In this document: positions 703 to 63,865 of the stretch, in pieces
Layout: every line of letters begins with the position of its first letter
Position numbering within the stretch: the stretch's first letter is position 1
Virus record (IMG/VR): IMGVR_UViG_3300032296_003307
Coordinates: 124,001-188,000 of that record
Direction: 5' to 3' (one strand)
Length of the DNA: 64,000 nt
Position numbers and translations under genes: made by a program
The notes under the pieces: generated by a model
The model's database searches: none
The model's input: the letters and a program-made list of their open reading frames with translations, nothing else
Told to the model about the DNA's origin: nothing

Positions 703-1101
703 ATGGGAAAAAGATTTATTATAACAGAAGAAGAGAAAAAAAGAATTCTCGGACTTTATGAACAGGACGAACCAACACCTGAAACAACTGATGAAAAACC
801 ATCATTAATTGACACCTTAAAACAAATGGGATTTGAAGAAAGTTCTGACCGTATTGGTTTGTGGCAAATAAAAAAAGACGACAATACATATGCTGCGGTT
901 TTAACGTTGAATCCAACAAAAGACCAAATTAGCAAAGCGGAAATTGTAGGAACTCCAGATATCCTTTCCACAATACAAAAGGCATTCAACGAGGTCAACA
1001 TTCCAAATATTATTTCAGGTGAAAAACTAATTACTCGAGCACCATTTAAAGAAGAAAATTTAATTAAGAAATTATCAGAACCGGCAAAAAGTGAGTTTTA
1101 A
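703..1101 (+). CDS. Hypothetical protein with MKRFIITEEEK-type leader
   Basis: Start reassigned to ATG 703: MGKRFIITEEEKKRILGLYE. Confidence 0.8.
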   Translation: MGKRFIITEEEKKRILGLYEQDEPTPETTDEKPSLIDTLKQMGFEESSDRIGLWQIKKDDNTYAAVLTLNPTKDQISKAEIVGTPDILSTIQKAFNEVNIPNIISGEKLITRAPFKEENLIKKLSEPAKSEF

Positions 1102-2015
1102 TGAAATTCAAAATAACCCATACACAATATAAAAAATTAACAGAATCATTGGACCCTGATGTTCAAGATTTTTTTAGTGCTGAAAAGGGTAAGTTTCATT
1201 TGTTGGCACCAATTCCAATTAGTAGAACAACCGCTTCTGAGGTTATAAAAAGAATTTTGAAATCAGAAAACAAAAAGTATTTTTTTGGTGATGATATTGA
1301 CCTTAATGAATTATCTTTAGTTAACAGATTAAGATTTGGTGTTTATTTAGAAGAGGTCTTAAGCGAGGTTGGTACAAGAGGTCATAACTATGAAGGATTT
1401 ATGGCAGGTCTTTTTGATGGATATCTACCTAAAGACACTAATTATTGGTTTGATTATAGGATTAGAGAGGGTTCGGTAGAACAAAAGTTTATAAAAAGTA
1501 GTGGAGAATCACCACAACTTAAAACATATGCTAATTTCATAAAAAACAATCCTCAATACGAAGGTTTATTAGATAAACAAAATACTCCTGAAATCATCAA
1601 ACAGAAAATACAAATGTTAAACAGTCCTGAGTTTTTAACAGACATTTACATTTTTTCAACTAAAACACCTGAACCAGGAAAAGGTTATAGAATCGATAAT
1701 TATGTTGTTTACAAAGATGAGATGATTAAGATTTTAATGAATCCTAATAATCTTAGAGAGCCTAAACAAAAAGGACAAACCGCTTTGAGAATACCGGCAA
1801 GTGTCTTGGGGGGAATTGATTTTACCATAATAACTCCAAGATATAAATCGTCCGAACTACAGGAACTTGTAAAATTGGACGAAAAAGAACGTGCGGTGTT
1901 AAGTGCGTTTGGTAAACATAGTGAACACATAAGACCAGATGTAATTAAAGATTTGAGTAAAAACTTAGATGAGTTTATCGAATCACTTATTGAAATACAA
2001 GAAGAATATGAATAA
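1101..2015 (+). CDS. Leader-bearing protein, possible PD-(D/E)xK nuclease fold
   Basis: Leader MKFKITHTQYKKLTES. RGHNYEGFMAG...FDY...VEQK resembles E...D...ExK. The fold call is tentative. Confidence 0.45.
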   Translation: MKFKITHTQYKKLTESLDPDVQDFFSAEKGKFHLLAPIPISRTTASEVIKRILKSENKKYFFGDDIDLNELSLVNRLRFGVYLEEVLSEVGTRGHNYEGFMAGLFDGYLPKDTNYWFDYRIREGSVEQKFIKSSGESPQLKTYANFIKNNPQYEGLLDKQNTPEIIKQKIQMLNSPEFLTDIYIFSTKTPEPGKGYRIDNYVVYKDEMIKILMNPNNLREPKQKGQTALRIPASVLGGIDFTIITPRYKSSELQELVKLDEKERAVLSAFGKHSEHIRPDVIKDLSKNLDEFIESLIEIQEEYE

Positions 2016-2292
2016 AAAATCAATAGACGAACAAGCTATCAAGGCGTATATGAATTTAGAATCGGTACATAACCATTTAGACGAAATTTTTATTATATTT
2101 GATACTGAAAAAAGAATTGCAATTGCAAAAGACGATAGAGAATTGGCTGATTTTATTTCAGAACAAATGAGAACATTAAGTAATGTTGAAAATGGATTAA
2201 GATTCGGTAAAGATTACCTAAAAAACTTAGTCGGTTTAAGTTGGGACCTATATGGTGGTGACATAACCACAAGAACTGATGGTGACGATTAA
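2008..2292 (+). CDS. Hypothetical protein
   Basis: ATG 2008 overlaps the upstream stop; helical, charged sequence. Confidence 0.7.
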   Translation: MNKKSIDEQAIKAYMNLESVHNHLDEIFIIFDTEKRIAIAKDDRELADFISEQMRTLSNVENGLRFGKDYLKNLVGLSWDLYGGDITTRTDGDD

Positions 2293-2609
2293 TGTATTAT
2301 AAAAGATTCGTCCGAATTGTTGTTTTTAAATAATAGAAAAAAAGAAACTTGATTACCGAAGAATTTATTGAAAGTCAGGTAAACATCGTCAACAAATACT
2401 TTCTTATAGTTATTTTTATCTAAATACTCTAACTTTGTTTTATAGTTTTCGCTATGTATTTTATTATTTCGATTCAAATAAAAAAAATAAAAATATTCAC
2501 CTAAAACAACATCATCAATTTTTTCTATCTTTTCAATCAAACCTGAATAATACCTATTACTTATTAAATTCAGAGATTTCAACAAAACATCTTCGTTTAA
2601 TTTCGACAT
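2289..2609 (-). CDS. Hypothetical protein
   Basis: 106-aa ORF convergent with the previous gene. Confidence 0.65.
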   Translation of the reverse strand: MSKLNEDVLLKSLNLISNRYYSGLIEKIEKIDDVVLGEYFYFFYLNRNNKIHSENYKTKLEYLDKNNYKKVFVDDVYLTFNKFFGNQVSFFLLFKNNNSDESFIIH

Positions 2610-2685
2610 ATCATAATTATAAACGATTGTTGTCGGATTGGAAATATAATTTTGTTCTTTAACTATAATTCACTATCTTCGTGGT

Positions 2686-8033: not shown

Positions 8034-8606
8034 ATGAAAATAATAATCACAGAATCACAATACAAATCATTATTGTCTGAACAAACATCAACAAGTGATG
8101 GATGTAAAGTTTGGGTAGAATCAAAAAACGACCCAAAATACATAAAATATATAAACGCACTAAATTTGTACATGAGAGGAAAATCTATTGTTGACTTCTT
8201 TAGGTCAAATCCTGATGCCACAAATGATATTTTAAATAAAAAAGAAGATGAGTTGGTAAAAAAATACCCTGTAAATAATAGATACTTGGGTTTTGGCTCA
8301 GATAGGATATTATCAATAAATTCAATTATGGTTGGTAAGGGTCGTGCCGCACGATATGCACAACAATATCCAAAACCTGATAAAGTTTGCGTAAGACCAA
8401 CTCCTACGACAACTACAACCACTACCATCGCACCACCACCAAACACAAATGCGTCAATTCAAAAGGCAAACAGTTTATTCCAAAGGTACAATTACATGTC
8501 AACTGAAGACAAAAAAAGAGCGGTGGCGAAATACGGTGACCCAAGCAAAGTGCCATTCCAAGGGGTTGATGTTTTATTATTAAGAAAAGAATATCCAAAT
8601 ATATAA
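8034..8606 (+). CDS. Leader-bearing hypothetical protein
   Basis: MKIIITESQYKSLLSEQ; short PTPTTTTT linker. Confidence 0.75.
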   Translation: MKIIITESQYKSLLSEQTSTSDGCKVWVESKNDPKYIKYINALNLYMRGKSIVDFFRSNPDATNDILNKKEDELVKKYPVNNRYLGFGSDRILSINSIMVGKGRAARYAQQYPKPDKVCVRPTPTTTTTTTIAPPPNTNASIQKANSLFQRYNYMSTEDKKRAVAKYGDPSKVPFQGVDVLLLRKEYPNI

Positions 8607-8615: not shown

Positions 8616-9134
8616 ATGAATTTACAAGAAAACATATCAAGGATTAAAGAAATGATGGGACTTCTCATAGAAAAAAGAGAAGGATGGTATAATCTTTTAA
8701 GAAAAAAACTACCAAACATGCCCGAATATGTTTTGAAAGATTGGATTTACAGAAAGGTTGATTACTATAAGGATTATGAATCTTTTAATAATTGGTTGGA
8801 TGAATGGATTGTTGGTTTAGATTGGGAATATCAAAAAGATTTTCCAATGACTATGGATATTTTTAGTGACAAAAGTAGAAAGGAATTAGAAGAAAGGATT
8901 AAGGGTTCGGTTAGGTCCGATGTTGACAGAGACGAAGAAAGACACAAAAATCAAAAAGAATTATTAAAGTTACGTGGAATATCAAAAGAACCAATTATTT
9001 TATTTAGGCATGAGGATGGTAAATACGACTTGGGTGAAGGTTGGCACAGAACGGTTCAAGCATTCATTCAATATCCTGACGGATTTATTCAACCAAATGT
9101 ATACATTGGACTTAATGCAAAATGGTTAGATTAA
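8616..9134 (+). CDS. ParB/Srx-like domain protein with leader
   Basis: EPIILF...DLGEGWHR resembles the ParB_N PI.v...i.DG.HR motif; leader MNLQENISRIKEMMGL. Confidence 0.6.
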   Translation: MNLQENISRIKEMMGLLIEKREGWYNLLRKKLPNMPEYVLKDWIYRKVDYYKDYESFNNWLDEWIVGLDWEYQKDFPMTMDIFSDKSRKELEERIKGSVRSDVDRDEERHKNQKELLKLRGISKEPIILFRHEDGKYDLGEGWHRTVQAFIQYPDGFIQPNVYIGLNAKWLD

Positions 9135-9135
9135 A

Positions 9136-9891
9136 ATGAACCTACAAGAAAACATATTAAGAATCAAAGAAGTAATGGGATTACTGTCTGAGGGAAAATC
9201 TGATAAACAGTTTTCAGGTAAAAATAGAATTATAATCATTGGACCACCAACAGTCGGAAAATCTACAGTTGCTGAAGAATTATCAAAACAACTCGGAATC
9301 GAATATGTTAAGTTAGACAAGTTACAAGAAAAAATAGGTCACGGTGATGGAAAAGAGTTGGAGTTAGTTAAAGAGGTACTATCAAACAAATTTGAAAAAT
9401 ACAACACACCATCCATATTAGATTTTGGTGGAGGACACGTCTATAATAAAGGAGTTAAAGGATTACTCAAAGATTATCCGAATGTAATATTGTTAATGCC
9501 GTCCAAGAACCAATCAAAGTCAGAAGAACTTTTAATGAAAGGAAACACCGAAAGATGGACAGGATTCATAGACCAAATAATTAAAGGGTTAAAAAGTGGA
9601 AAACACAATCATACAAAGGAAAAGGAATCTGAACTAATAGACAAACTGAAAAAGATGAAAAAGGGTGAAGGAGGAAAGTTCCACAAGAAAGATTTACCGA
9701 ACATACCTGAAATGAAAGGATGGGGAGGATTAAACTTGGATAAGGATTGGAACAAACATGTCCCTTTAACCAAAGAGGAGGATAGCATAAACAAAGAGAT
9801 TGCCAAACACACAGTTATTGTGTATGATAAGAATGGGGATAGAAAAACGCCATCAGAGATTGTAAAAGACATTAAAAAAATATTGAAATGA
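9136..9891 (+). CDS. Shikimate-kinase-like P-loop kinase with leader
   Basis: IIIIGPPTVGKSTVAEELS Walker A, D.D, and ILDFGGG, as in the aroK-like NMP kinase fold. Confidence 0.65.
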   Translation: MNLQENILRIKEVMGLLSEGKSDKQFSGKNRIIIIGPPTVGKSTVAEELSKQLGIEYVKLDKLQEKIGHGDGKELELVKEVLSNKFEKYNTPSILDFGGGHVYNKGVKGLLKDYPNVILLMPSKNQSKSEELLMKGNTERWTGFIDQIIKGLKSGKHNHTKEKESELIDKLKKMKKGEGGKFHKKDLPNIPEMKGWGGLNLDKDWNKHVPLTKEEDSINKEIAKHTVIVYDKNGDRKTPSEIVKDIKKILK

Positions 9892-10739
9892 GATTAAGAG
9901 AATCCATAAAAAGAATATTAGAGGAATACACAAAACAACTGAAAGATATGTTGGTTCCCGCAAATCCTAAAGGTAAATTACACCATTATTCAAGTTATCA
10001 AAACAGGGAAAGCATTCAAAAAAACGGTTTGATACCAAAAGTGGGGAGACAAACCACAAATTATATGTCAAAACAGTTTCCTGATGTTGAACCAATGCCA
10101 TTAATATTCACTCAAGACCCAAAACACGGTAATTTCTTCGGTGTTTATGGTAATGATATATGGGAAATAGATTTGAGCAAAGTAAATGCGAAGTGGTATC
10201 ATGACCCAATACATAAAGATGACGGAAACAATTGGGCGTTTTACGTCACGACAGACCCAATCCCACCATCGGCAATCAAACTAATTGGTTCAAATGAACA
10301 AAGAGATGATGACATGGAAGTTTATCGTCAGACAGGAAAGTTCCCAAACAGAAATGTGGAACCTGAAGAACCTAAAAAACCCGAAGAACCTGACATATGG
10401 GATGAAATATTGAGTCAAATCGGTGATGATGACTACATAACAATTCCTGCAGAGTATTTAAAAGAATCCACAAGAAGAACACTAAAGGAAATTACAAATC
10501 CAAATACCAAAAGAAGACATAATCAAATAAGACGACTTTTGATTATTATTTTGGAGAATTCAATAACTTGCGGTCCTGATTATGAACAGTATGAGAAATC
10601 TGTGCTTGATGACGTGGAAACGTTTATGAATGTTTTAGAAATAAAAGGACTAAGCGGACGTGAGGTAAAAGACCATATTGAAGAATATTTGATGTATTTT
10701 ATAAAGAGATATTACACCGAAGCCCAAGAAGATTGTTAA
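9888..10739 (+). CDS. ADP-ribosyltransferase/Tpt1-like domain plus C-terminal KRR..C module, with leader
   Basis: LHHYSSYQNRESIQKNGL...IFT...IWEIDL...IPPSAIKL pattern of His-type ART folds. Confidence 0.55.
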   Translation: MRLRESIKRILEEYTKQLKDMLVPANPKGKLHHYSSYQNRESIQKNGLIPKVGRQTTNYMSKQFPDVEPMPLIFTQDPKHGNFFGVYGNDIWEIDLSKVNAKWYHDPIHKDDGNNWAFYVTTDPIPPSAIKLIGSNEQRDDDMEVYRQTGKFPNRNVEPEEPKKPEEPDIWDEILSQIGDDDYITIPAEYLKESTRRTLKEITNPNTKRRHNQIRRLLIIILENSITCGPDYEQYEKSVLDDVETFMNVLEIKGLSGREVKDHIEEYLMYFIKRYYTEAQEDC

Positions 10740-10740
10740 T

Positions 10741-11289
10741 ATGAACCTACAAGAATCCATAAGAAGAATATTAAGGGAAGAATTAGAACATACTACATTT
10801 GAATCTTTTTTTTCAAAATACGGAGAAGATGTTTTGGAAATTATGAATAATCATTTTGATGAAGAAGTTACGATTAAAGAACTTGAAAAATATTATAATG
10901 ATGAAATTAAATATTTAAATAAAATAATAAACCAAAAACTACCAATATTTAGGTTAATAAAAGTTAATGATAATGTTTTAGAGAGTTTTATAAAATCAAA
11001 AAAAATTAAATCTGGTATATTTTGGACTTTAAATAAACAAGTAACAAAATATTGGGTATCTAGTGATTTATATGATGATAGATTTGAACTTGGTGGTGAC
11101 AATACTATTATTTTTGAGTCTGAATTATCTAATGAATTAGATATTGACATAGAAGGTACAATATTTGCTAGATTTACTTCATCATATGAAGATGAAATAA
11201 GGTTATTGGCAAATAACCCTATTAATATTAAAAATGTATTTGTTAATGGTAAAAAAATTAACATAGAAAATAAAATATTCATATCATAA
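10741..11289 (+). CDS. Possible R-S/T-E-type ADP-ribosyltransferase-like protein with leader
   Basis: LPIFR...GIFWTL...YEDEIRL motif spacing. Confidence 0.45.
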   Translation: MNLQESIRRILREELEHTTFESFFSKYGEDVLEIMNNHFDEEVTIKELEKYYNDEIKYLNKIINQKLPIFRLIKVNDNVLESFIKSKKIKSGIFWTLNKQVTKYWVSSDLYDDRFELGGDNTIIFESELSNELDIDIEGTIFARFTSSYEDEIRLLANNPINIKNVFVNGKKINIENKIFIS

Positions 11290-11744
11290 TGAACCTACAA
11301 GAATCCATAAGAAGAATATTAAAAGAAGAAATTGATTCAAAAGATATTAGTTCTTATTTGGATGTATCACCATTTTATAAATTACCATACCCATATCAAA
11401 AATCATTAATGATATTTAAAAATGAGGGAACTACAAATGATATGGAGATTAAAGATTTAATTGATGATGAGTTACAAACTTCTTTTAAAAGAAAAATGTA
11501 TTACTATGGAGTTGTCCCAATTAAATTAATAGAAGATGAGGTTACAGAACGATTAGGATGGGATAGTTTTGAGAATTACCATAAATGGTATGGTGATGAA
11601 GAAACGGACCACGGAGATTCGGTATTACCAATCATAATAGATTTTGATGATGAAGAATTAATTATAGATGGTTGGCACAGATTCCACTCCTATGTTAGAA
11701 AAGGATTAACTAAAATCCCAGTATTGGGTGTATACGTTGATTAA
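11289..11744 (+). CDS. ParB/Srx-like domain protein with leader
   Basis: LPIIID...IIDGWHRFHSYVRKGLTKIPV. Confidence 0.7.
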   Translation: MNLQESIRRILKEEIDSKDISSYLDVSPFYKLPYPYQKSLMIFKNEGTTNDMEIKDLIDDELQTSFKRKMYYYGVVPIKLIEDEVTERLGWDSFENYHKWYGDEETDHGDSVLPIIIDFDDEELIIDGWHRFHSYVRKGLTKIPVLGVYVD

Positions 11745-11745
11745 T

Positions 11746-12174
11746 ATGAACCTACAAGAAACCATAAGAAGAATATTAAGGGAAGAAACTTATTCACCTG
11801 CGGGGAAAGAATACACACCAGCAAGAGTTGTTGTTCATACATCAAATCCCGTTGTGAGAGATAATATAAAACTTACAGGGTTACAAGTTTCAGTTGGGGA
11901 ATGTTATCAAGTATACGTAAACAGAAACGAAACTAATCCCGATAAAATTAAATGTAAAAAAGCGATATTTGCCACGGATTCATTGAAAAATAGGGACATG
12001 TTTAATTCAACATATGACGATGATATTTGGTTGATTAATACTGAGTGTGCGAATGTTAAGTGGTATAAGGACAAACATTTTGATTACCCTGACTCAAAAC
12101 ACATAGTAACATTTGAAAACATATCACCTGAGTGTATCAAATTGATTCATAAAGGTACTGGTAAAAGTCGTTAA
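11746..12174 (+). CDS. ADP-ribosyltransferase/Tpt1-like protein with leader (paralog of 9888)
   Basis: VVHTSNPVVRDNIKLTGL...IFAT...DIWLI...KWYKD...ISPECIKL aligns by eye with 9888. Confidence 0.55.
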   Translation: MNLQETIRRILREETYSPAGKEYTPARVVVHTSNPVVRDNIKLTGLQVSVGECYQVYVNRNETNPDKIKCKKAIFATDSLKNRDMFNSTYDDDIWLINTECANVKWYKDKHFDYPDSKHIVTFENISPECIKLIHKGTGKSR

Positions 12175-12557: not shown

Positions 12558-12668
12558 ATTAGATATAAATATAAGGGGTAGGGGGTTTGGGGATGGTAAT
12601 TAGTTAGATTAGTAGGTAATTTAAAAAATTAATTTTTATTTTTGATTTAAAAATTATATCTTTGTATT

Positions 12669-13298: not shown

Positions 13299-14123
13299 AT
13301 GGACATTAATAGAATATATCATGAGGATTGTTTGAATACTATGAAGAATATGCCAAATAATTTTGTATCACTAACAGTTACCTCACCACCATATGATGAT
13401 TTAAGAACATATAATAATAAAGTTAAGGGTTTATCAACCGAATTCAACGGATACTCATTTGATTTTGAAAATATTGCACGAGAGTTATATCGTGTTACAA
13501 AATCTGGAGGTGTTGTGGTATGGGTAGTTGGGGATGCAACACACAATGGTTCAGAAACAGGAACATCTTTTAGACAGGCATTATTTTTTAAAGAGGTTGG
13601 ATTTAATATCCACGATACAATGATATACATGAAGAACAATTTTTCAAATCCTTCTTCTAATAGATATCATCAGATATTTGAGTATATGTTTGTTTTATCT
13701 AAAGGTAAACCAACAACATTTAATTCAATCAAAGACAGGAAGAATGTCTATGGAGGTCAAGTCGGTTCATGGGGTAAAAATACTGTTAGACAAAAGGACG
13801 GAACCATGAAGGAAAACACTAAAAAAGTAATAGAAGAATATGGTCAAAGATACAATGTTTGGCAATATAAAACATCTAAAAATGGACAAGAAGACGAGGT
13901 TGCTTACGAACATCCGGCAATATTCCCTATTGATTTGGTTAAAGACCACATTATTTCATGGACAAACCCTGGCGAAATAGTATATGACTGTTTTATGGGT
14001 AGCGGAACTACAGCAAAAGCAGCAACGGCATTAAATAGATTGTGGATTGGTTCTGAAATAAATGAAGAATATGTTGATATTTGCAACAGAAGACTCAATA
14101 GTATACAAACAGAAATAATTTAA
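13299..14123 (+). CDS. Beta-class DNA methyltransferase (N4-C/N6-A)
   Basis: Motif IV TSPPY precedes motif I DCFMGSGTT; HPAIFP..L and GSEINEEY also present. Confidence 0.93.
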   Translation: MDINRIYHEDCLNTMKNMPNNFVSLTVTSPPYDDLRTYNNKVKGLSTEFNGYSFDFENIARELYRVTKSGGVVVWVVGDATHNGSETGTSFRQALFFKEVGFNIHDTMIYMKNNFSNPSSNRYHQIFEYMFVLSKGKPTTFNSIKDRKNVYGGQVGSWGKNTVRQKDGTMKENTKKVIEEYGQRYNVWQYKTSKNGQEDEVAYEHPAIFPIDLVKDHIISWTNPGEIVYDCFMGSGTTAKAATALNRLWIGSEINEEYVDICNRRLNSIQTEII

Positions 14124-14998
14124 AAAGGGGTAGGGGATAATCAGTTCCCGGCTTCACACAGATTATACTAAAAGGTATTATACCATAAAGTATAACCATT
14201 CACTCATGGTGTTTCACTCCGTTCCACACATTCGTTCATAGTTATACTTTATTCCCCACTTAGTTAATCTATAGGTTTACTTCCGTACCTGTAATGTCAA
14301 GTTATATATTGACTTGTTTACAGTAACCTGTTTACTGTAAACTAATCGTATCGGTTATCGTATATTTACGTATCATTACGTATCAGATTCCCCCATCCTC
14401 ACGAGCCCCCATCATAAGAATGGTCCACAGGTGAGGGGTTCACCGATAATGTGGCTCAGTGGTTTATCATTTACGGCTCACAAAACCCTATGGGGTGAGC
14501 CAATTAGTAAACCACAGTGAGCCACAACACCGACATAGGTCATAATGGGACTTCATAGATAAGGTTGTCCCACATTCTACCACATCACTATTATACCCTA
14601 CTGAATGGACCAATTGAGGTCTTCATGATTGGGGTAAATGAGGGGGTCACATAACAAGGGACACGGTTGAAGAAGGGGTTTCTATCATAGGACTTCGTCT
14701 CCCCCACCTATGTTCCATTACTTACATTATTCTCTGGGAAACACATATAGTAAAAAAAGTGGTTCTAGTGATATCAGGAGAGGGGATTTTTTAGGTAGTT
14801 TCCCTTGTGGTGCTATCGTAAGGGGTAATTTATGGATGGGGTCTTAGTGGTGGTGGGAAAAAGTGGGGGAACCAAAACCCCGTAAAGGGATTGTGTAGTG
14901 TCGAGCGAGCAACTGACATTTTGACAAAATCAAGTTTTTCCCCCTATACTTATCCACATTCTCACATATATTTATGTGTATAAATTCCCCCTGACAAT

Positions 14999-15370
14999 AT
15001 GACAGAAGAAGTTATCCACATTTCAGGTTCCACAAATAATCCACATAAAGTGGGGGACCATAACTATGATTTATTGTTCCACACTTTTTTCACCCCTATC
15101 ATAGAACATAAGGATGGGGGAATAACCATTACATGGAAACTAAAGAAAGGACCATCCCATGTTCAGGGGTGGGTATATTTGGAACAACCAAAGAAGGGGT
15201 GGAAAAGAAAACCTATTATGACAAACCATTATACAATGACCAATACCAATCTCAACCGTATTCACGAGTTCATGGATAAGTATATTATCTACAAGAGTGA
15301 TTCACATGAAAGGGTTAAACGTTTCTTTCTAAATGAATCCATTAGATTGGTTAAGGAAGAAAAGGTTTAA
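14999..15370 (+). CDS. Hypothetical protein (start uncertain)
   Basis: 123-aa ORF whose 5' end overlaps DnaA boxes, so it may start later. Confidence 0.4.
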   Translation: MTEEVIHISGSTNNPHKVGDHNYDLLFHTFFTPIIEHKDGGITITWKLKKGPSHVQGWVYLEQPKKGWKRKPIMTNHYTMTNTNLNRIHEFMDKYIIYKSDSHERVKRFFLNESIRLVKEEKV

Positions 15371-15767: not shown

Positions 15768-16215
15768 ACCACAAAGGTACTGAATAACTTTGACACTACC
15801 AAATTATTTTCTTCCCCCTATTATTGGGGCGAGCCGCCTCTGATTAAGCTTCAGTGAACGAGTCGTCCCCAGCCCTTGGTCCTCTATCCGATTTCCCACA
15901 ATACAAAGATAGTGAATAGGTATGGAATAAACTAATCCCCCATCCTAAGAGTTATCCACATCGACATGTTTATAAGTGGGGGGTCCATAAGTTATCCACA
16001 AAGGGGTGGGGGTAAAATGTGGATAAGTCCCCCCATACACCCCCCCCGTTATATGGGGGTGGGGGTCCCCCCTGTGACACCCTGTCAGGTATCCCCCCCC
16101 TCTCCCCCCGTCATTTTGTCAGTTTAGGGGGGTCAATACCTTCGATGAAATTTCTGGAAAAATTTTTGGGAAATTCGGTTTATATTTTAATTTAAATTTA
16201 TTAACATAAGGTGAC

Positions 16216-17325: not shown

Positions 17326-17425
17326 TTCCTAATTCCCCTTCGGTAATATATTCTCTTATATGGTGGGGGTTCGGTATAATTATTCCTGAACGGTAAATTC
17401 CCAATGGTCGGGGTATTTATATATT

Positions 17426-17920: not shown

Positions 17921-17927
17921 ATAATTT

Positions 17928-17958
17928 AAACCCCATCCTTCAACAGGTGGGGTTTTTT
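17928..17958 (+). terminator. Intrinsic terminator
   Basis: AAACCCCA/TGGGGTTT stem followed by a T tract. Confidence 0.75.
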
Positions 17959-18104
17959 GTTTTTCCCAAAAAAACTTTTCAATCTGAAATATACCCCATT
18001 TTCAAAAAAAAATTTCCGGAAAAATTTTCAGAAAATTGACTATCTTTGTTCCTTGGGAAAATAAATTTAATCCTTCTTAATGGTTGGGGGAGTATTTATT
18101 GTTT

Positions 18105-18491: not shown

Positions 18492-18569
18492 TCTTTTTGT
18501 TTCTGATGCCGGAAACGGTTCCCGAATCCCCCGACCCCCTTTTTTTATTTTGGTTGATATTTATAATTT

Positions 18570-18833: not shown

Positions 18834-18849
18834 TAAATTTTTATATCGT

Positions 18850-19374
18850 ATGAAAAAGATTGTAAGATTAAATGAATCCGATTTGATTCGTATTGTTAAA
18901 AGGGTTCTTAAAGAAAATTTGGAATCAAGACCAAATATGATTAGAGTTAGATTAACCCCCGAATTGGAAGAAACAATGATGGAAAGAAATAAGATGGGGG
19001 GAATAGATTTTAATACTGAAATGGATTTAATTTCTGGTATGTGGTACAAAATCGGTCAGGGTCGAGGTAATTTTCACTCTCAAAATTATGAACCCCAATC
19101 GTTTTTCTTTTCAAAATATAAACCAAATCAAAATGAAATTTATACCATGGAAGTTAGATGTCAAGGTAGAGTTCATACCGACATGGCTAAACAGTTAACT
19201 CTTATGTTTGATGAAAGGTTTAATAATTTTCTTAGTAGTGAAAATCCGTACGATAGGTGCTATGATGCGGGTGGATTTTACTCAAAGTTTGAAACTAGAG
19301 ATGGAAAACCAAATTTTGATGTTGGTGAACAAGACCATAGAGGCTATTTTGAAATAACCAAAACTAGCGATTAA
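18850..19374 (+). CDS. Leader-bearing hypothetical protein
   Basis: MKKIVRLNESDLIRIVKRVLKE. Confidence 0.8.
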   Translation: MKKIVRLNESDLIRIVKRVLKENLESRPNMIRVRLTPELEETMMERNKMGGIDFNTEMDLISGMWYKIGQGRGNFHSQNYEPQSFFFSKYKPNQNEIYTMEVRCQGRVHTDMAKQLTLMFDERFNNFLSSENPYDRCYDAGGFYSKFETRDGKPNFDVGEQDHRGYFEITKTSD

Positions 19375-19390
19375 TTGATATTTATATTAT

Positions 19391-19729: not shown

Positions 19730-19739
19730 TACACTTGAT

Positions 19740-19768: not shown

Positions 19769-19789
19769 ATTTCCGCATATTTATTCTAT

Positions 19790-20577: not shown

Positions 20578-21006
20578 ATGAAAAAGATTGTTAAATTAAC
20601 CGAATCTGATTTGCTTAGAATTGTTAAACGAGTTATAAAAGAAGAATATGGAAAATCGTATTCAATTGAATCCTTATACGACGTTATAAAAGATGAATTA
20701 ATAAATGACCAAGCCGTACAAGATTGGATTAAATTCACGGAGTCTATGGGAGCCTTGAATGATTTTATGGTCGATGATGATGGTGTTGGAATTGCTGACC
20801 GTGCTGAATTGGAAGGAGATACTTTGGGTGTTACAGGAAACGTTAGCATTTTGTCCGCAACCATTCTACCCATCTTGGTTAGATTGGGAATCACAAACAA
20901 ATCAAAATTAAAATCAAACCCTGAGGAAATGGATATGGTAAATCATATTGCCAAATTATTATATTCGGACATAAAACCTGACTATAATCCTCATGGTGAT
21001 TTATAA
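20578..21006 (+). CDS. Leader-bearing hypothetical protein
   Basis: MKKIVKLTESDLLRIVKRVIKEE. Confidence 0.8.
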   Translation: MKKIVKLTESDLLRIVKRVIKEEYGKSYSIESLYDVIKDELINDQAVQDWIKFTESMGALNDFMVDDDGVGIADRAELEGDTLGVTGNVSILSATILPILVRLGITNKSKLKSNPEEMDMVNHIAKLLYSDIKPDYNPHGDL

Positions 21007-46407: not shown

Positions 46408-47853
46408 ATGTATACATGTTTAAATTTTACGATAACAAACAGAAATGTTCTTAGACCAATTGTAGTCACTTGGAGAGGGTGTGACGGGGCAACAAGAAGC
46501 CAAAGCTTAAGAAGAAGAGGGTCTATGACCGTTTGTGCATTAAATGGTAGTGTAACCTCAACTTTCAGAAACTTCGCCACAATAACAAGAAACTGTCAAT
46601 GTTTTAATTATCAAGTAACGAATACAAGTATATTCTATCAAACATTTGAACATGTAAACTGCAATGGATTTACAACCACGACAGGCATAGGACCAAACGA
46701 AACTGTTTCTTTGTGTATGTGTCGTCCGTGTTTTTTACCAAACCAAACAAATGTTAATTTTACATTAGTGCAAGGTCAACCATGTGTTAACGGACTACCA
46801 GCAACTCCTACACCATCAACAACACCAACTGTTACCCCAACCCCACTTCCATGTTCTTCAGGGATTACTGCAGATGCGGGTTTTTGGTTCTATTATGATT
46901 GTTGTGGAAATTATGTTTCAGGTATTAGCGCAAATACTGTGATATGTATGAACCCAAATTTTGCGAATTCAGGGGTTATTCCAATATATTCTGCTTGTTC
47001 ACAAACATGTGTAACACCAACACCAACTAAAACTAAAACATCAACTCCGACACCAACACAAACGCCCACAGACCCATACACAGGAACAACTCAAACTCCA
47101 ACTACAAGTCCAACACCAACTACAACTCCTTCGGCAACTACAACATCAACTCCGACAGTAACGTCCACACCAACAAATACGCTTACTCCTTCAGCAACAA
47201 CAACATCAACTCCGACAGTAACGTCCACACCAACAAATACACTTACTCCTTCAGCAACAACAACACCAACAGAAACCGTAACTCCTACACCAACAAATAC
47301 ACCTAGTCAATCGGCAACCACAACTCCTACACCAACAAATACACTTACTCCTTCAGCAACAACAACACCAACAGAAACCGTAACTCCTACACCAACAAAT
47401 ACACTTACTCCTTCAGCAACAACAACACCAACAGAAACCGTAACTCCTACACCAACACCAACGGTTACTGACCCGTACACAGGAACAACTGAAACACCTA
47501 CACCAACACCAACAAATACACCTAGTCAATCGGCAACCACAACTCCTACACCAACTGTGACATCAACACCAACAAATACAGGCACAATGGCGAGCACAGG
47601 GGTTACCGTTAATTTTGGTACAACAGAAGCAACAACATGTACTCCTGACGCTGGAACGGCCTTAGTTTACTTACCACCAGGTGGAACAATATCTGAGACA
47701 ACTACAATTTATTTTGATGCTGGATTGACAACACCATACACTATTAACCCTACCGCTAACTTTATTGTAGACGCAACTGCGGGAAGTACAGTTCATAACT
47801 TTAACAGACTTACAGGTGTAGTTGGTTCCGCAACAATAACAACTTGTCCGTAA
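46408..47853 (+). CDS. Cys-rich module plus long PT-repeat protein (paralog of 43209)
   Basis: N-terminus MYTCLNF...VTWRGCDG aligns with 43209; ~190-aa T/P/S tract. Confidence 0.8.
   Translation: MYTCLNFTITNRNVLRPIVVTWRGCDGATRSQSLRRRGSMTVCALNGSVTSTFRNFATITRNCQCFNYQVTNTSIFYQTFEHVNCNGFTTTTGIGPNETVSLCMCRPCFLPNQTNVNFTLVQGQPCVNGLPATPTPSTTPTVTPTPLPCSSGITADAGFWFYYDCCGNYVSGISANTVICMNPNFANSGVIPIYSACSQTCVTPTPTKTKTSTPTPTQTPTDPYTGTTQTPTTSPTPTTTPSATTTSTPTVTSTPTNTLTPSATTTSTPTVTSTPTNTLTPSATTTPTETVTPTPTNTPSQSATTTPTPTNTLTPSATTTPTETVTPTPTNTLTPSATTTPTETVTPTPTPTVTDPYTGTTETPTPTPTNTPSQSATTTPTPTVTSTPTNTGTMASTGVTVNFGTTEATTCTPDAGTALVYLPPGGTISETTTIYFDAGLTTPYTINPTANFIVDATAGSTVHNFNRLTGVVGSATITTCP
47125..47580 (+). repeat. 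60-bp coding tandem repeats
   Basis: 47341-47397 is identical to 47401-47457; 47125, 47185 and 47245 show a 60-bp period. Confidence 0.9.
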
Positions 47854-50975: not shown

Positions 50976-51004
50976 AATACAAAGATAATAAAATAAACTC
51001 TCAT

Positions 51005-51124: not shown

Positions 51125-51949
51125 TCAGCACAATAAACTATAATATTCCTTGAAATGTTTTTTTCTATCTTCTAATCCTATGGTTCCACCGTTAACACAT
51201 CTAGTTACAGAGATTACTGTATTATCATCAGCTCCCGCATCACATTTTGTTAAACAGTTTTTAAAAAAGAACCAACCTGCAGACATCAACGGGTATTTTG
51301 TTGAAACCAAATCGGGATTTGCTAAAATATCATCATCAACAAATTTATCAAACGCTGTGTAATTGTCTTTTCCGGTCAATTGGATATATCCTCTGCCACG
51401 GAATTTCCATCCTTCCTTAGTGTTCTCAGCACCATTTCCCATTCTTGCACCATATACCTTAGATGCGATTTTTTCAGGTTGTCTTGCGTACTGTTCCGCA
51501 AGAGTTCTATTTGGGAAATACCTTGGAAATATCTTCATTAATCCGTCAACATTATAATTTAAGTTTTCCGAAACCGCTTTAAAACCCGCTGATTCATGAC
51601 CACATTGTGCCAAAAAATGAGCCAACCTTAAAGGCGTGTTAATTTTGAACTTTTCCATAACGTCAGGAATTTGTAATAATACCGCATCAGGTATGTGACC
51701 TTTTAATTTTGATAAATCAATTGGACCTGAAACTACAGGTATTACCACGTCTTCTTTTACTACAGATTTTACCCCCATTTTTTCCAAAGTTTTAGGACCA
51801 GCAATGCCGTCGTCAGTAAGCCCATTTTTTTTCTGCCATTCTTTAAGTGCTTTTTCTGTATTGGGACCAAAATCACCATCAGCGGTTAAACCTAACACTT
51901 TCTGAAGTTGTTTAACTTCTTCTCCTTTTGAACCTTTTTTTAATAACAT
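51125..51949 (-). CDS. GH19 endolysin with N-terminal peptidoglycan-binding domain
   Basis: LKKGSKG..V..LQ...DGDFGP.T...WQ..NGL..DGIAG; AHFLAQCGHES...ENLNY...FRGRGYIQLTGKDNY...NGG. Confidence 0.92.
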   Translation of the reverse strand: MLLKKGSKGEEVKQLQKVLGLTADGDFGPNTEKALKEWQKKNGLTDDGIAGPKTLEKMGVKSVVKEDVVIPVVSGPIDLSKLKGHIPDAVLLQIPDVMEKFKINTPLRLAHFLAQCGHESAGFKAVSENLNYNVDGLMKIFPRYFPNRTLAEQYARQPEKIASKVYGARMGNGAENTKEGWKFRGRGYIQLTGKDNYTAFDKFVDDDILANPDLVSTKYPLMSAGWFFFKNCLTKCDAGADDNTVISVTRCVNGGTIGLEDRKKHFKEYYSLLC

Positions 51950-52007
51950 AACTTTTTTTCTTATAAATATTTGTTATAACTTGTAATTCTTATTATCTTT
52001 GTAATTG

Positions 52008-52612: not shown

Positions 52613-52634
52613 AAAAAATCATTATCTTTGTAAC

Positions 52635-58216: not shown

Positions 58217-58219
58217 CTG

Positions 58220-58307
58220 TGGAAGGTGAGGGGCTCGAACCCTCGCGCCGGTCACCCGACCTAACAGTTTAGCAAACTGTCCCCTTCACCAACTTGGGTA
58301 ACCTTCC
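58220..58307 (-). tRNA. tRNA-Ser(GCT)
   Basis: GGAAGGT/ACCTTCC acceptor stem, ACAGT-TTGCTAA-ACTGT anticodon arm, long variable arm, GGTTCGAG T-loop. Confidence 0.92.
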
Positions 58308-58334: not shown

Positions 58335-58349
58335 AACACATTGGATTTG

Positions 58350-58437
58350 CGGAAGCTGAGGGATTCGAACCCCCGGACCCCGTTAAGGGTCTTCAGTTTT
58401 CAAGACTGACGCGATAGACCAACTCTGCCAAACTTCC
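58350..58437 (-). tRNA. tRNA-Ser(TGA)
   Basis: GGAAGTT/AGCTTCC acceptor stem, TCAGT-CTTGAAA-ACTGA anticodon arm, long variable arm, GGTTCGAAT, G discriminator. Confidence 0.92.
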
Positions 58438-58946: not shown

Positions 58947-59726
58947 ATGAAAAATGTCGTTAAATTGTCAGAAAGAGATTTGAGAAAAATCGTCTCTAAG
59001 GTTTTAAGTGAACAGCCAAAAAAAGAAATGGACCCATATATTTCAACACCAGGTAGGGGTGATTATTTGAATAGAACCGCAGGGTCTGAGGGTGAAATGT
59101 TAGGGGTTGAAAAAATACTCCAAGGAAAAAAACTTGACGGGTCAATGTTTTTAAATGGTGTTGACAAAATTGATAAAAATAGTTCCGCTTACAAAGCAGG
59201 ATTGTCTGACCTAAAAAAACTATACAATATACTTAAATCAAAATCAATAAGTGGTTTTGATGTTACCGTTCAAGGTGGTGCGTCTGCGGTAGGGTCTTCT
59301 GGTGGATATGATAATGACGCTCTTGCTAAAAGAAGAGCCAACAATTTTATAAGAGCGGTAAGAGAAGATTTACCTGCCGATTTACCAATGAAATTCAATG
59401 TAACCTCAACAGTTGGTAAGGCAACTAAACAAAATTCTCCTGAAGCCAATGCGGAACAATTTGTAAAACTTTCATATCCTGATAAAACATCAATTAAAAG
59501 AGCACCGGTCCAATTGGGTAGAGATAATACAGCTGGTAGATATAGTGACCCAAACTTCCAACCAAAGAACAAACCTGTTGGGGGGGATAGACCTTACATG
59601 ATTTTGAAGATTCATTATAACGAAGGAACAAAACAAGGTGTTTTAAATAAGTTATATGGCGCGACTAGAGATGAAAGAACTGTAACAACAGATATTACCG
59701 ATAAGGCGAAAAAATTAGGACTCTAA
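58947..59726 (+). CDS. Leader-bearing protein with OmpA/MotB-like C-terminal motif
   Basis: MKNVVKLSERDLRKIVSKVLSEQ; VTVQGGAS...NDALAKRRANN. Confidence 0.55.
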   Translation: MKNVVKLSERDLRKIVSKVLSEQPKKEMDPYISTPGRGDYLNRTAGSEGEMLGVEKILQGKKLDGSMFLNGVDKIDKNSSAYKAGLSDLKKLYNILKSKSISGFDVTVQGGASAVGSSGGYDNDALAKRRANNFIRAVREDLPADLPMKFNVTSTVGKATKQNSPEANAEQFVKLSYPDKTSIKRAPVQLGRDNTAGRYSDPNFQPKNKPVGGDRPYMILKIHYNEGTKQGVLNKLYGATRDERTVTTDITDKAKKLGL

Positions 59727-60356
59727 TTCTGAATCTTTTTGAACACTATCAACAACTTTCATTAATATATCTTTAACCATATTTCCACCAACGATAAAAG
59801 CCCCCGAAACTAATAAACGGGATAATATATCATTAAATTCGTTGATTGTGAATGATTCGTCTTTGTACATATAATCTAAATAACCCACTAAAGGAATTAG
59901 ATAAGTATATGACATTATATCGGCAAATTGATGTCCCATAGTCGCAAGGTTTTTCATAAATTGTTTGAAAAGTCTCATCAAGATTTTACCTTTTGACACG
60001 ACCCTTTTCAATACGGGAAGAAGACCCTCAGTTTTTAAATCTTGATACAAATCCTGTATTTGTGTTTTATTATTATAATAAATCATTGCTAAGGCGGCAA
60101 TCATAATTTTGGTAATTTGAGTATCTGTAAGCTCAGGATTTTCACCTTTTAAAAACTCTTCTAAAGGTTTCCCAATACCACCAATTGCAGAACCCCAAGT
60201 AATTAAAAACCTGAAAGAAACACCAAAATCTTTCATGGCTCTTTTTTTCAAACCTTTAGCATATTCTATTGTTGATTTCGCCAATTCTTTTAAGTCTGAA
60301 CCAACGCTTTCAGTTAAAATTATTTTGTATTGTTCTTCTGTAATTACGATTTTCAT
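59715..60356 (-). CDS. Leader-bearing helical/membrane-associated protein
   Basis: MKIVITEEQYKIILTES; glycine-rich hydrophobic helices. Confidence 0.7.
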   Translation of the reverse strand: MKIVITEEQYKIILTESVGSDLKELAKSTIEYAKGLKKRAMKDFGVSFRFLITWGSAIGGIGKPLEEFLKGENPELTDTQITKIMIAALAMIYYNNKTQIQDLYQDLKTEGLLPVLKRVVSKGKILMRLFKQFMKNLATMGHQFADIMSYTYLIPLVGYLDYMYKDESFTINEFNDILSRLLVSGAFIVGGNMVKDILMKVVDSVQKDSELES

Positions 60357-61694: not shown

Positions 61695-61727
61695 AAAAAA
61701 GAAAAAGGTCGGAATCAACCGACCTTT
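61695..61727 (-). terminator. Intrinsic terminator
   Basis: AAAGGTCGG/CCGACCTTT, same stem as at 51014. Confidence 0.65.
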
Positions 61728-61731
61728 CTTT

Positions 61732-62484
61732 CTAATTACCCCAAAGTTTTTCAACAACAAACTTAAATCTCTTTTGGTTCACATATTCTTTTACCTGAGA
61801 TTTAGGAAGCCAAAATTCAAATTCACCAACTTCTTCAATTCTTCTTTTAAGGTCTGCCTTAAATCGAGAAACTTCGTTGGCGTTCTTGATGTAAGTGATA
61901 CCCATGTTTTTAGCACAAATGGCTCCCATGCCTGTTAAAATTGAAAACTCATCTGTCAAAGTTGCTCCACAACAACGACAAACATCACCATTTTCTTCTG
62001 TCATTTTAACAGTTACTTTAACCGCCTTTTCAGTGATTTGGGTAGCTTTAATCATATCAACCAAGATTGGCATGAACTCCAAACCATACTCTTTTTTTAG
62101 TTTCAGAGCGACACCACGTTTTATTTTGATGGACTCATTGTTTAAGGGTATGTTGATTTTTTGTGCGGGTGCTTTGTTTTCTTTTGCGATTTGTTTAACC
62201 GCTGAGATTATTTGTTTATCAGACAAACGTCTCCAAGTTTTGTATTGTTCTTTAATTTTGAGAACAAATTCGTTGGGTCCTTGATAATTCACGATTGATT
62301 TCAGGTCGTCAGAAAGTTCGTCAACGTTAATATCGTTAACCTTTTCTTCTTGGATAAGAATTTTTTCTGCAATTTCAAACTGTTTTGAGGTCAAGCGACC
62401 GTATTTGTGTAATCCGGGTTGGATGTTACGAATGAAAGAATTGTTTCCGTTGTACTCTCTTACTTTTTGTTCTACTGTTTTCAT
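61732..62484 (-). CDS. Zn-finger (DUF6011-like) protein
   Basis: CRCCGATLTD..SI..GMGAICA; TATCTTTG promoter upstream. Confidence 0.7.
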   Translation of the reverse strand: MKTVEQKVREYNGNNSFIRNIQPGLHKYGRLTSKQFEIAEKILIQEEKVNDINVDELSDDLKSIVNYQGPNEFVLKIKEQYKTWRRLSDKQIISAVKQIAKENKAPAQKINIPLNNESIKIKRGVALKLKKEYGLEFMPILVDMIKATQITEKAVKVTVKMTEENGDVCRCCGATLTDEFSILTGMGAICAKNMGITYIKNANEVSRFKADLKRRIEEVGEFEFWLPKSQVKEYVNQKRFKFVVEKLWGN

Positions 62485-62554
62485 GGTGGTTGTTTTTAAC
62501 AATACAAAGATACGCGCTTTTTTCGATTGCACAACTATTTATAAAGAAAAAATT

Positions 62555-63865
62555 ATGAACGCATATTTTTTCAATATGACTCCTGAAGAAAGAGAGTCAA
62601 TCTTAGACAAACATAAACATGTTTACAACGGTTATCAAACTTTGCAAGCAAATATCCCAAATCCCCAACCATTATATGTTCAGGATTATGCTAACGACAA
62701 AGAAGGGATAACAGTGTCCAACAAAGGTAAGGTAATGTCATACAGAAACCAAAACATAAATGAAAGTATTCAAGAAGGTAATATGTGTGAGCAGTGTGGT
62801 AGTATGATGAACGAAGGTGAAACGTGTGAACAATGTGAAAGCAGATATGAAAGTATAAAAGAAGGTGAAATGTGTGAACAATGTGGAGGCACAATGTCTG
62901 AAGGTAAATGTAAAGTGTGTAGTAAATACAAAAAATACGACGTTGATATATATGATGTTGAAGATTTAAATCCAAAAAACAAATTTGATTATGTTGAAGG
63001 TATGGAAACTTCAGAGTTAGATGAAATAAGAATTGGAGATTTAGAACTTGACAAACCATACAGTATGAAATTTACGAAATTTGACGAACCAGATTTTCCA
63101 AAATACGACAAAAAAATGAAGTACACAGGTAAAATACAATATAAAGACGGAAAACCTATGCATGGATTCTCATCAATTGAGGACGAACCAAGTTGGGCAA
63201 GTTTTACAGGAGATGATGACGAAGAATTAAGAGATGTATACCCTATTGATTTAGAAGAAATGGAATCAAATTATGACTATAAATTACCTGCATACCAATT
63301 CAAATCACATGGACCAATAGACGCTTACGATGAAAGCGATAAGAATTATTTTGAGGATTCTGTTGATGTGTTTGATGATGAAGATTTACAGGCGGGAAGA
63401 GCTTTTTCAGACATGGGAGACAAAAGTGATTGGTCGGATGAAAAAATATTAATGAGTTTAAGAAGTGATTCTGATAAATCTATGGGAACCGATACATCGA
63501 TAGATATGGATTTAAGTGACGTTAAAGAACCATATACTTTTGCATCAGGAGGTCCCGGTAGAAGTATTGGTGTATATGAAGAATTGGAAGAGGAATCTTC
63601 GGCAAAAATAGGTCCATACGCGAACAAATCTTTAAAAGAACTTCAAAATGAGTTGGCTAAATTAAACGCCAAAGCAGACGAACACAAAGAAAAAGATGAA
63701 AACTTACCTGTAGATATTAAAATGAAACTAAATCAAGTACGTAACGCAATTCAGGCTAAAAGAAAATCAAAAGTTGAAGAAGATGTTAATGAAGATTTAC
63801 GAGAGTCGTTCATCAAACAAAAAAATAAAATAACAGAAATGTTTAACAGAATACAAAAATACTAA
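62555..63865 (+). CDS. Leader-bearing acidic protein with tandem CEQCG Zn-ribbon repeats
   Basis: Start reassigned after TATTTATA: MNAYFFNMTPEERESILDKH; EG..CEQCG repeats; many (I/L)xE sites. Confidence 0.75.
   Translation: MNAYFFNMTPEERESILDKHKHVYNGYQTLQANIPNPQPLYVQDYANDKEGITVSNKGKVMSYRNQNINESIQEGNMCEQCGSMMNEGETCEQCESRYESIKEGEMCEQCGGTMSEGKCKVCSKYKKYDVDIYDVEDLNPKNKFDYVEGMETSELDEIRIGDLELDKPYSMKFTKFDEPDFPKYDKKMKYTGKIQYKDGKPMHGFSSIEDEPSWASFTGDDDEELRDVYPIDLEEMESNYDYKLPAYQFKSHGPIDAYDESDKNYFEDSVDVFDDEDLQAGRAFSDMGDKSDWSDEKILMSLRSDSDKSMGTDTSIDMDLSDVKEPYTFASGGPGRSIGVYEELEEESSAKIGPYANKSLKELQNELAKLNAKADEHKEKDENLPVDIKMKLNQVRNAIQAKRKSKVEEDVNEDLRESFIKQKNKITEMFNRIQKY

Follow-up and report, generated by a model that had tools for sequence, protein, structure and literature searches.

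Internal proteins of bacteriophage T4 carry N-terminal capsid-targeting sequences (CTS) of 10–19 residues on otherwise unrelated, polymorphic proteins (PMC9026906; PMC3012670). T4 gp21 cleaves after the Glu of L/I-X-E (PMC9026906) and Alt is cut at I-T-E-6 and L-T-E-619 (PMC5694885), while gp67 and gp68 of the T4 core are likewise cleaved and for the most part removed (PMC9026906). That T4-like phages can load varied proteins by means of the CTS has already been suggested in work on T4 (PMC3012670, PMC5694885, PMC9026906). Here, a 64,000-nt stretch of DNA, called the window throughout (bases 124,001–188,000 of the 268,739-bp JGI metagenome contig Ga0335303_1556210, IMG/VR record IMGVR_UViG_3300032296_003307), was found to carry some fifty genes whose products begin with one of a few short common leaders, which probably act as capsid-targeting tags of the T4 kind.

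In encapsulins, a cellular system, a short terminal peptide likewise suffices to load unrelated enzymes into an HK97-fold shell, but this peptide is usually C-terminal and uncleaved, and the shell contains no DNA and does not deliver its load to other cells. The MuF-domain polymorphic toxins of temperate phages also join a conserved N-terminal head-associated module to variable C-terminal effectors; this module is, however, a large domain and not a peptide, is not removed by a protease, and occurs once or a few times per genome. The jumbo phages phiKZ, 201phi2-1 and SPN3US have about 50 head proteins, many of them cut after Glu at a short motif, and the gp53 and gp54 paralogues of the giant-phage system begin with an identical 15-residue N-terminus that includes cleavage motifs (PMC5694885). 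The giant phages differ in that the motif is (A/S/G)-x-E, the protease belongs to the S80 family, only 8–19 proteins are processed, and the propeptides are mostly long and not common to unrelated proteins, unlike the leaders described here.

The T4 system is the closest. Like the CTS, the window leaders are short N-terminal segments on unrelated proteins that end in (L/I)-x-E, I-T-E and L-T-E, both gp21 sites in Alt, recur in them, and the T4 head gene set (S77 protease, acidic scaffold and gp23) is matched in leader-carrying relatives. Unlike T4, there are at least five interchangeable leader types of two-part design, usually with two Glu sites; they run over 13–22 residues and are strongly conserved across thousands of uncultured phages. 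T4 has four named cargo proteins (IPI–III and Alt), whereas 50+ tagged genes lie in 64 kb; the candidate cargo includes a sigma factor, PPK2, a kinase and peptidoglycan hydrolases, and the hosts appear to be Bacteroidota. Judged by sequence, it is well supported that an abundant, uncultured group of Bacteroidota phages would have a version of the T4 CTS/gp21 system on a greatly enlarged scale.

A curated list of 103 genes was used for the window. Strong leaders are present on 50 of them, and 54 are tagged if weak cases are included (types A, B, C, D or E), which bears out the claim, made earlier in a sequence-only reading, that about 55 proteins or about half of the genes are tagged. All 40 coordinates listed in that reading carry the N-termini described; the leaders given for 6917, 32404 and 59715 are real, but these positions are the ends of minus-strand genes, whose true starts are 7240, 32682 and 60356. 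Type A (14 genes) has the pattern MKKIVRLTESDL.RIVKRVLKE, type B (10 genes and 4 weak ones) MKIIITESQ, and type C (6 genes) MKRFIITEEEKK.IL. Type D1 (10 genes) is a helix ending in I-L-K-E-E and type D2 (8 genes) reads ..RIKEMMGLL.E, while an extra type, E, with DYKKRF..L.ES.MGDV.P, is found on two genes (24783 and the GH108 lysozyme gene 29997). At least 9 of the 18 N-terminal residues are common to another gene in 37 of 90 genes, against 0 of 90 for internal segments, and [ILV]xE occurs inside the first 10 residues in 53 of the 103 genes against a background of 12% (p = 3e-22). Beyond residue 30 the 54 tagged proteins fall into 53 BLASTP clusters, in agreement with the earlier description of the downstream sequences as unrelated. 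The sharing of leaders is thus confirmed as an observation. Genes with the same type also form tandem arrays, at 8616–12174 (type D) and 17426–22494 (mostly type A). The tagged genes are listed below, where P1 denotes an A-TATTTAT-A promoter upstream, "/" a position after a leader Glu, and L-numbers are loci of relatives.

703..1101, plus strand: type C, 132 aa (MGKRFIITE/EEKKRILGLYE/Q)
1101..2015, plus strand: weak B-like, 304 aa
3660..4001, plus strand: type D2, 113 aa, P1
4271..4600, plus strand: type D1, 109 aa (..ILRILSE/E), P1
6295..6642, plus strand: type D1, 115 aa
6917..7240, minus strand: type B, 107 aa (MKILITE/SQ), P1
7287..8021, plus strand: type D2, 244 aa, zinc-ribbon cargo, P1; orthologues with type B (L029) or D1 (L028)
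8034..8606, plus strand: type B, 190 aa
8616..9134, plus strand: type D2, 172 aa; L043 orthologue with type B
9136..9891, plus strand: type D2, 251 aa, P-loop kinase-like cargo, P-loop at residues 35–43
9888..10739, plus strand: type D1, 283 aa
10741..11289, plus strand: type D1, 182 aa
11289..11744, plus strand: type D1, 151 aa; homologue in L080, 93% identical
11746..12174, plus strand: type D1, 142 aa
12171..12557, minus strand: weak B-like, 128 aa, P1
17426..17920, plus strand: type A, 164 aa, Glu at 9 and 22, P1
18105..18491, plus strand: type A, 128 aa, P1
18570..18833, plus strand: type D1-like, 87 aa, P1; L113 orthologue with type A
18850..19374, plus strand: type A, 174 aa
19391..19729, plus strand: type A, 112 aa, P1
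19790..20143, plus strand: type B, 117 aa, P1
20204..20563, plus strand: type D1, 119 aa, P1; L034 orthologue with type A
20578..21006, plus strand: type A, 142 aa, P1
21029..21400, plus strand: type A, 123 aa, P1
21412..21750, plus strand: type A, 112 aa
21763..22494, plus strand: type A, 243 aa, P1
22569..23171, plus strand: type C, 200 aa, P1
23197..23502, plus strand: weak B-like, 101 aa
23512..23895, plus strand: weak B-like, 127 aa
23898..24761, plus strand: type C, 287 aa
24783..25250, plus strand: type E, 155 aa (..YKKRFYNLME/STMGDVRP), P1
25587..25892, plus strand: type B, 101 aa, P1
25895..26257, plus strand: type B, 120 aa
26590..26853, plus strand: type B, 87 aa, GTG start, P1
27118..27705, plus strand: type D1, 195 aa, GTG start, P1
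27702..28067, plus strand: type D2, 121 aa
28070..28717, plus strand: type D2, 215 aa
28724..29191, plus strand: type D1, 155 aa
29210..29497, plus strand: type B, 95 aa
29997..30977, plus strand: type E, 326 aa, GH108 lysozyme cargo, P1
31686..31940, plus strand: type A, 84 aa, P1
32404..32682, minus strand: type D2, 92 aa, P1
33578..34423, plus strand: diverged type A, 281 aa, P1
34640..35206, plus strand: type B, 188 aa, ECF-type sigma factor cargo (region 2 from about residue 23), P1
36329..36730, plus strand: type B, 133 aa, P1
36796..37344, plus strand: type C, 182 aa, P1; homologous leader and start in L057
38205..38534, plus strand: type A, 109 aa, P1
38531..38869, plus strand: type A, 112 aa
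38866..39273, plus strand: type C, 135 aa
47865..48239, plus strand: diverged type A, 124 aa
48252..48566, plus strand: type C, 104 aa
53799..54923, plus strand: type D2-like, 374 aa, PPK2 cargo (domain from residue 127), P1; L019 orthologue also D2
58947..59726, plus strand: type A, 259 aa, P1; L096 orthologue with type C
59715..60356, minus strand: type B, 213 aa, P1

The leaders are 7–22 residues long, with (L/I)-T-E and (I/V/L)-x-E as their invariant residues. The first site, at residues 5–9 with its Glu at 7–9, is I-T-E in types B and C, L-T-E in type A and L-Q-E in type D, and a second (I/V/L)-x-E follows at residue 13, 19–20 or 22. Among 145 type A leaders from IMG/VR, in which positions 13–22 lay outside the search pattern, I/L15 is conserved in 96%, V/I16 in 98%, I/V/L20 in 98% and E22 in 92%, while position 21 is variable and conservation collapses right after Glu22. 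Glu22 is invariant in one orthologous family, where the stretch just after it is a hypervariable linker of 0–16 residues. The two tripeptides at which Alt is cleaved are those invariant in types B and C (I-T-E) and in type A (L-T-E), in a comparison with the T4 CTS limited to the cleavage tripeptides quoted in PMC5694885. As far as sequence can indicate, the leader invariants thus match the cleavage sites of gp21. Type A itself combines a first segment like that of B and C with a helix like that of D1. Modelling with AlphaFold2 of an orthologous family recognised by RYMFFSNLEQ (36 sequences, mean pLDDT 74.5) predicted an extended stretch at residues 1–8 and a helix at 9–27, with a low-confidence hinge between leader and helical core. 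With Foldseek, the modelled cargo matched nothing but DUF6321 proteins of T4-like cyanophages, weakly and never at E <= 0.001. Of note, the last 45 residues of the L077:2562-3047 family form a conserved Cys-rich mini-domain, ..KLCARGK..YPSAYANG.AVQVC.G..C, which is also present in the neighbouring gene L077:3499-4224 and has no fold matches other than the weak ones to DUF6321 proteins.

Cargo that meets an (I/L)-x-E protease should avoid that motif in its mature part. In the window the observed/expected ratio of [IL]xE was 0.78 for the mature parts of tagged proteins and 1.51 for untagged proteins, the value for the 85-kb left flank of the window being 1.08. For 133 unrelated cargo representatives from IMG/VR the ratio was 0.72 (bootstrap 95% confidence interval 0.60–0.82), against 1.12 (1.06–1.17) for size-matched untagged proteins, with no overlap of bootstrap replicates between the two sets. 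The control motifs [IL]xD, [IL]xK, [IL]xQ and VxE showed no depletion, [IL]xQ and VxE being slightly raised. This test is indirect; the motif-specific depletion seen in two independent sets is consistent with exposure of the cargo to such a protease, and avoidance of [IL]xE might serve as a general computational test for protease-exposed virion cargo.

The contig that holds the window was read over 149 kb, comprising the window and the left flank, which ends at the neck gene gp13. Nearest the window is a block of small genes, then a sugar-modification cluster, then GroES and GroEL. Beyond these lie, in order, a clamp-loader-like AAA protein, PolB, 7-deazaguanine synthesis genes, RNR, DnaB and a 5'-3' exonuclease, and farthest out a RecA/UvsX-like protein, T4 gp32 (PF08804), the tail sheath (PF04984), the tube, a faint T4_baseplate match and T4 gp13 (PF26809). 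Since T4 gp13 and gp32, a UvsX-like protein, sheath and tube are all present, the phage is a T4-like myovirus. Bacteroidota hosts are indicated by the host-type TAnnTTTG boxes described below and by the fact that two of the few genomes matching a leader pattern are Bacteroidota metagenome-assembled genomes. No cultured relative was found among 50,697 phage records when these were searched (megablast/tblastn) with DNA of the window, one of the type A proteins, the window's 1,281-aa protein and a 23-residue leader consensus, the sole match being that of the RNA ligase, at 46% identity or less. Identity with the bS21-encoding Bacteroidetes phages of PMC9723584 was considered and was not confirmed, a simple motif scan having given no bS21 gene.

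Relatives are abundant among uncultured phages. A back-translated type A DNA pattern was found on more than 118 IMG/VR contigs of 5–412 kb, as against only 4 contigs in the genomes of 185,579 species. From the IMG/VR loci 172 distinct leader-bearing proteins were collected, which form 133 unrelated clusters, and few of them have Pfam domains (LysM, PG_binding_1, phage lysozyme, hydrolases). A search of a 5.8-billion-protein set with the leader only gave one protein, the E-value demanded at that size being too strict for 40 residues. In the full-text literature searched, no paper was found that contains the leader sequence or ties capsid targeting to metagenomic phages.

The leader-carrying relative L077 encodes a Peptidase_S77 protein (L077:9151-9882; PF03420, 5.9e-25), Gp23 (PF07068, 3.9e-72) and an acidic scaffold. 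Several leader loci hold a T4-type head module, 87 S77 proteases were counted across the loci of the clade, and a 296-kb contig combines leaders A, B and C with such a module. Thus, the gp21-like protease expected from the sequence-only reading is present in relatives with leaders, and the 149 kb read of the window's own contig end short of the head module. Searches for the phage's own capsid gene (with the exact protein of a same-sample contig, by metagenome scan and by protein search) did not return the window's contig; the relatives' capsid gene family comprises at least 7,939 clusters at 90% identity. The same reading had proposed to look for the motif on capsid propeptides, and indeed the propeptide of the relatives' major capsid protein (MCP) is invariant up to L-I-N-E60 and variable just beyond. 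A gp21-type cut would be expected to leave such a pattern, and many type A leaders end in the same tripeptide. In the 296-kb relative a B-leader gene (L180:6198-6644) lies inside the head module, between two small core-protein genes, and its paralogue (L057:12415-12933) follows a gp6-like baseplate gene.

Orthologous proteins were found to exchange leaders. The family RYMFFSNLEQ..GHDWAQDHI, which adjoins the head module in 51 loci, carries leader A or D1 depending on the phage; D1 matches the second half of A in the alignment, the final Glu is invariant, and a hypervariable linker of 0–16 residues leads up to the conserved domain. Window genes 7287, 8616, 18570, 20204 and 58947 have orthologues with other leader types, the swaps seen among orthologues being A/D1, D2/B/D1 and A/C. 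Because orthologues exchange them, the types would be equivalent, detachable modules, and the sequences suggest that A–D (and E) are interchangeable versions of one tag.

The tagged genes also differ from untagged ones in their promoters. In relatives' loci A-TATTTAT-A stands upstream of the protease gene (86/89), the gp68-like core gene (64/66), the scaffold gene (70/115) and a gp25-like gene (10/11). On the window's own contig it stands ahead of the genes for sheath and tube and of baseplate-like and fibre-like genes, and is absent upstream of gp32, UvsX, DnaB, RNR and PolB. In the window it is found upstream of 29 of 50 tagged genes vs 8 of 49 untagged ones, and the host-type TAnnTTTG box upstream of 0 of 50 tagged vs 8 of 49 untagged genes. 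Leaders on replication enzymes had been named in the sequence-only reading as evidence that would speak against it; none occurs on recognisable replication, nucleotide or sugar-metabolism enzymes in the flank, where about 5 of 111 genes of at least 70 aa are leader-like (an M23 peptidase, its neighbour, a small D1-like gene with a TATTTAT box, and a pair with an I-I-T-E leader).

As for the cargo, four domains named earlier were recognised in the window, namely an ECF-type sigma factor (34640), PPK2 (53799), a P-loop/shikimate-kinase-like protein (9136), whose P-loop is shifted by about 25 residues by the leader, and the GH108 lysozyme (29997), which has a type E leader. A peptidase had been placed among them, but the sole one found is an M23 protein with a D2-like leader about 2.5 kb to the left of the window (L126:6853-7476, minus strand) and not inside it. 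ART-like and ParB-like cargo was not found by Pfam or PHROGs in the window proteins scanned, and for about 40 window proteins these searches mostly gave no match. Over window, flank and relatives, the peptidoglycan enzymes among tagged cargo are M23, GH108, lysozyme, LysM and PG_binding_1 proteins. An ordinary endolysin (51125–51949, minus strand; PG_binding_1 and GH19) has no leader; that the extra enzymes (GH108, M23) are tagged and the ordinary endolysin is not is as expected if the extra ones are virion-associated.

Taken together, the leaders are probably T4-type capsid-targeting propeptides on a greatly expanded scale, whose cargo would be packaged, cleaved and injected. Tagged proteins would be made late, from the A-TATTTAT-A promoter class of tail and prohead genes, and the N-terminal tag would dock each to the scaffold core while the prohead is assembled. 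Two parts would make up the tag, an extended M-K-(K)-h-h-h-(T/Q)-E and/or an amphipathic helix ..R-I-h-K-x-h-h-x-E. A prohead protease of the gp21 family (Peptidase_S77) may then cut after the conserved Glu of (I/L)-x-E, removing 7–22 residues and leaving the mature cargo free inside the head, from which it is presumably ejected into the next cell along with the DNA. Core docking, cleavage, presence in the virion, ejection and effector action are all steps that we infer. The sequence-only reading is thus borne out in part: its portable T4-like tag, removed by a Glu-specific prohead protease, is supported computationally by the genome type, the relatives' head genes, the cleavage sites, leader swapping, motif depletion, the promoter and the untagged replication enzymes; the ART and ParB part of its cargo was not confirmed.

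Several points weigh against this interpretation. The whole case rests on sequence and prediction, and a head loaded with more than 50 protein species would be without precedent among T4-like phages. For a cleavage site alone, the leaders are longer than necessary and under stricter conservation, and the tagged family RYMFFSNLEQ shows no depletion of [IL]xE. The S77 protease, scaffold and gp23 are known from relatives and not from the window's contig, and the window phage appears to be a more distant member, with tube and sheath 35–40% identical to theirs. Some of the cargo (the sigma factor, PPK2 and the kinase) consists of ordinary enzymes of the cytoplasm and is unusual. Last, the "late" reading of TATTTAT was inferred from gene content, and in one relative the box also lies 28 nt upstream of a DnaB-like gene.

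The size of the conserved unit, a strand and amphipathic helix of about 22 residues and thus more than a protease site requires, would fit a docking or oligomerisation element for a non-capsid partner (a conserved host protein, or part of a phage factory, a membrane or a chaperone assembly), as would the cytoplasmic enzymes among the cargo (sigma factor, PPK2, kinase), the resemblance to gp21 sites then being coincidental. Such an element is unlikely, as it leaves unexplained the depletion specific to [IL]xE, the sharp end of conservation at a Glu with I/L/V at P3, the common late-type promoter and the restriction to T4-like phages with S77 proteases. Up to cleavage, all the evidence for capsid targeting applies equally if the tags are cut in the prohead and the proteins are core, filler or assembly proteins, or are degraded, or stay inside the head, and are not delivered effectors. 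T4 gp67 and gp68 offer a precedent (PMC9026906), and the B-type leader gene inside the head module of the 296-kb relative points the same way. This seems rather improbable: the depletion of [IL]xE argues that cargo was selected to survive the protease, and its enzymes have plausible roles in entry or takeover (peptidoglycan hydrolases, sigma factor, PPK2).

Tandem arrays of same-type genes could be taken to mean ordinary paralogous families, with conserved N-termini and fast-diverging C-termini, and the leaders could also be export signals, in either case with no common tag function. Both ideas are very hard to sustain, the former in view of the unrelated known folds, the 53 clusters among 54 cargo proteins and the exchange of leader types by orthologues, the latter because the leaders are charged and amphipathic and lack the hydrophobic core after a basic N-terminus of Sec/Tat or lipoprotein signals, genuine signal peptides being found on other window genes, at 57032 and 61683. 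An origin in the nucleic acid, as an mRNA or translation feature of leaderless transcripts or as a DNA recombination handle, would be suggested by the A-rich first codons and by TATTTAT lying 5 nt ahead of ATG in the window, from which many transcripts should be leaderless. At residues identical between leaders, codon identity is however close to that expected from codon usage (observed vs expected 0.60 vs 0.49 for A, 0.46 vs 0.54 for B and 0.65 vs 0.51 for D), and therefore selection acts on the peptide and not on DNA or mRNA; leaders are also found on genes internal to operons and in relatives whose 5' untranslated regions measure 12–25 nt, and amino-acid conservation extends to residue 22. 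A nucleic-acid feature is thus highly improbable.

If the leaders are capsid-targeting propeptides, a broader picture can be put forward tentatively, as a possibility that falls somewhat short of likely: abundant uncultured T4-like phages of 200–300 kb that infect aquatic Bacteroidota may pack and inject dozens of ready-made proteins per virion by means of interchangeable tags, among them an ECF sigma factor, a polyphosphate kinase, a nucleotide-kinase-like enzyme and several peptidoglycan hydrolases, so that much of the "hyperplastic" accessory genome would be a delivered arsenal and not early genes. This would be by far the largest known capsid-loaded protein repertoire in a T4-like phage. 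Tag and late promoter would then give a simple sequence rule by which virion-delivered proteins could be predicted from the genomes of thousands of uncultured phages, many orphan accessory genes would be recast as injected counter-defence or takeover factors, and a natural portable packaging tag would be at hand for engineering Bacteroidota phages.

Further upstream signals were noted. A-TATTTAT-A lies 4–7 nt (mostly 5) ahead of ATG in 38 window genes, e.g. at 17409–17425, 19374–19390 and 34623–34639; being so close to ATG, it should give transcripts that are leaderless or nearly so. In relatives it sits 12–25 nt upstream of the start codon. TAnnTTTG is found 4 nt ahead of ATG at 12652–12668, 15768–15784 (minus strand), 30998–31014, 50976–50992 (minus strand), 51988–52004 and 52618–52634. 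It resembles the Bacteroidota -7 promoter box and is found on untagged genes (those for RNA ligase and a metallophosphatase, among others); these are probably expressed early, and leaderless as well. A third signature, GTACATT(T/C)A(C/T)G about 20 nt upstream of ATG with AAAGTT directly ahead of ATG, accompanies about 40 small untagged genes in L288:1-16500 (bases 105–121 kb of the window's contig). The capsid gene and a 151-aa core gene never have a TATTTAT box (MCP upstream regions in 162 loci, e.g. L180:9960-10000); instead, AATAAAC / ATAAATAAA precedes them by about 20–30 nt (142/162 and 72/79) and is possibly a separate late promoter class.

In the left flank, two paralogues (L292:5125-5727 and L292:12141-12548) have a sixth common leader, MKDIIR.NQLAGIITEGQ, and a TATTTAT box. 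Each lies directly upstream of a replication gene, PolB in one case and the clamp-loader-like AAA gene in the other, and each is followed by the same 30-nt sequence, AAACCAAGCCTTTTTTATTA.ATT.ATG.T. Bases 76–105 kb of the contig (L292, L291 and L290) encode GroES, GroEL and a 7-deazaguanine pathway (QueC, PTPS, GTP cyclohydrolase I), together with a sugar-modification cluster of about ten genes (DegT, transketolase halves, epimerase, glycosyl- and methyltransferases).

Within the window, 880 bp at 14123–14999 have no open reading frame, a G+C content above that of the surroundings and runs of G and C; no Rfam match was found for this segment, relaxed thresholds included. Sequence searches of the PDB with two large window proteins were uninformative. 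Three large proteins of 1281, 313 and 481 aa (39353–43198, 43209–44150 and 46408–47853) have in common a Cys-containing N-terminal domain of about 40 residues, ..YTC..T..N....P(V/I)T(V/I).W..C.G; the three proteins may be fibre-like. Two tRNA-Ser genes, at 58219–58307 and 58349–58437 (both minus strand), have the anticodons GCT and TGA.

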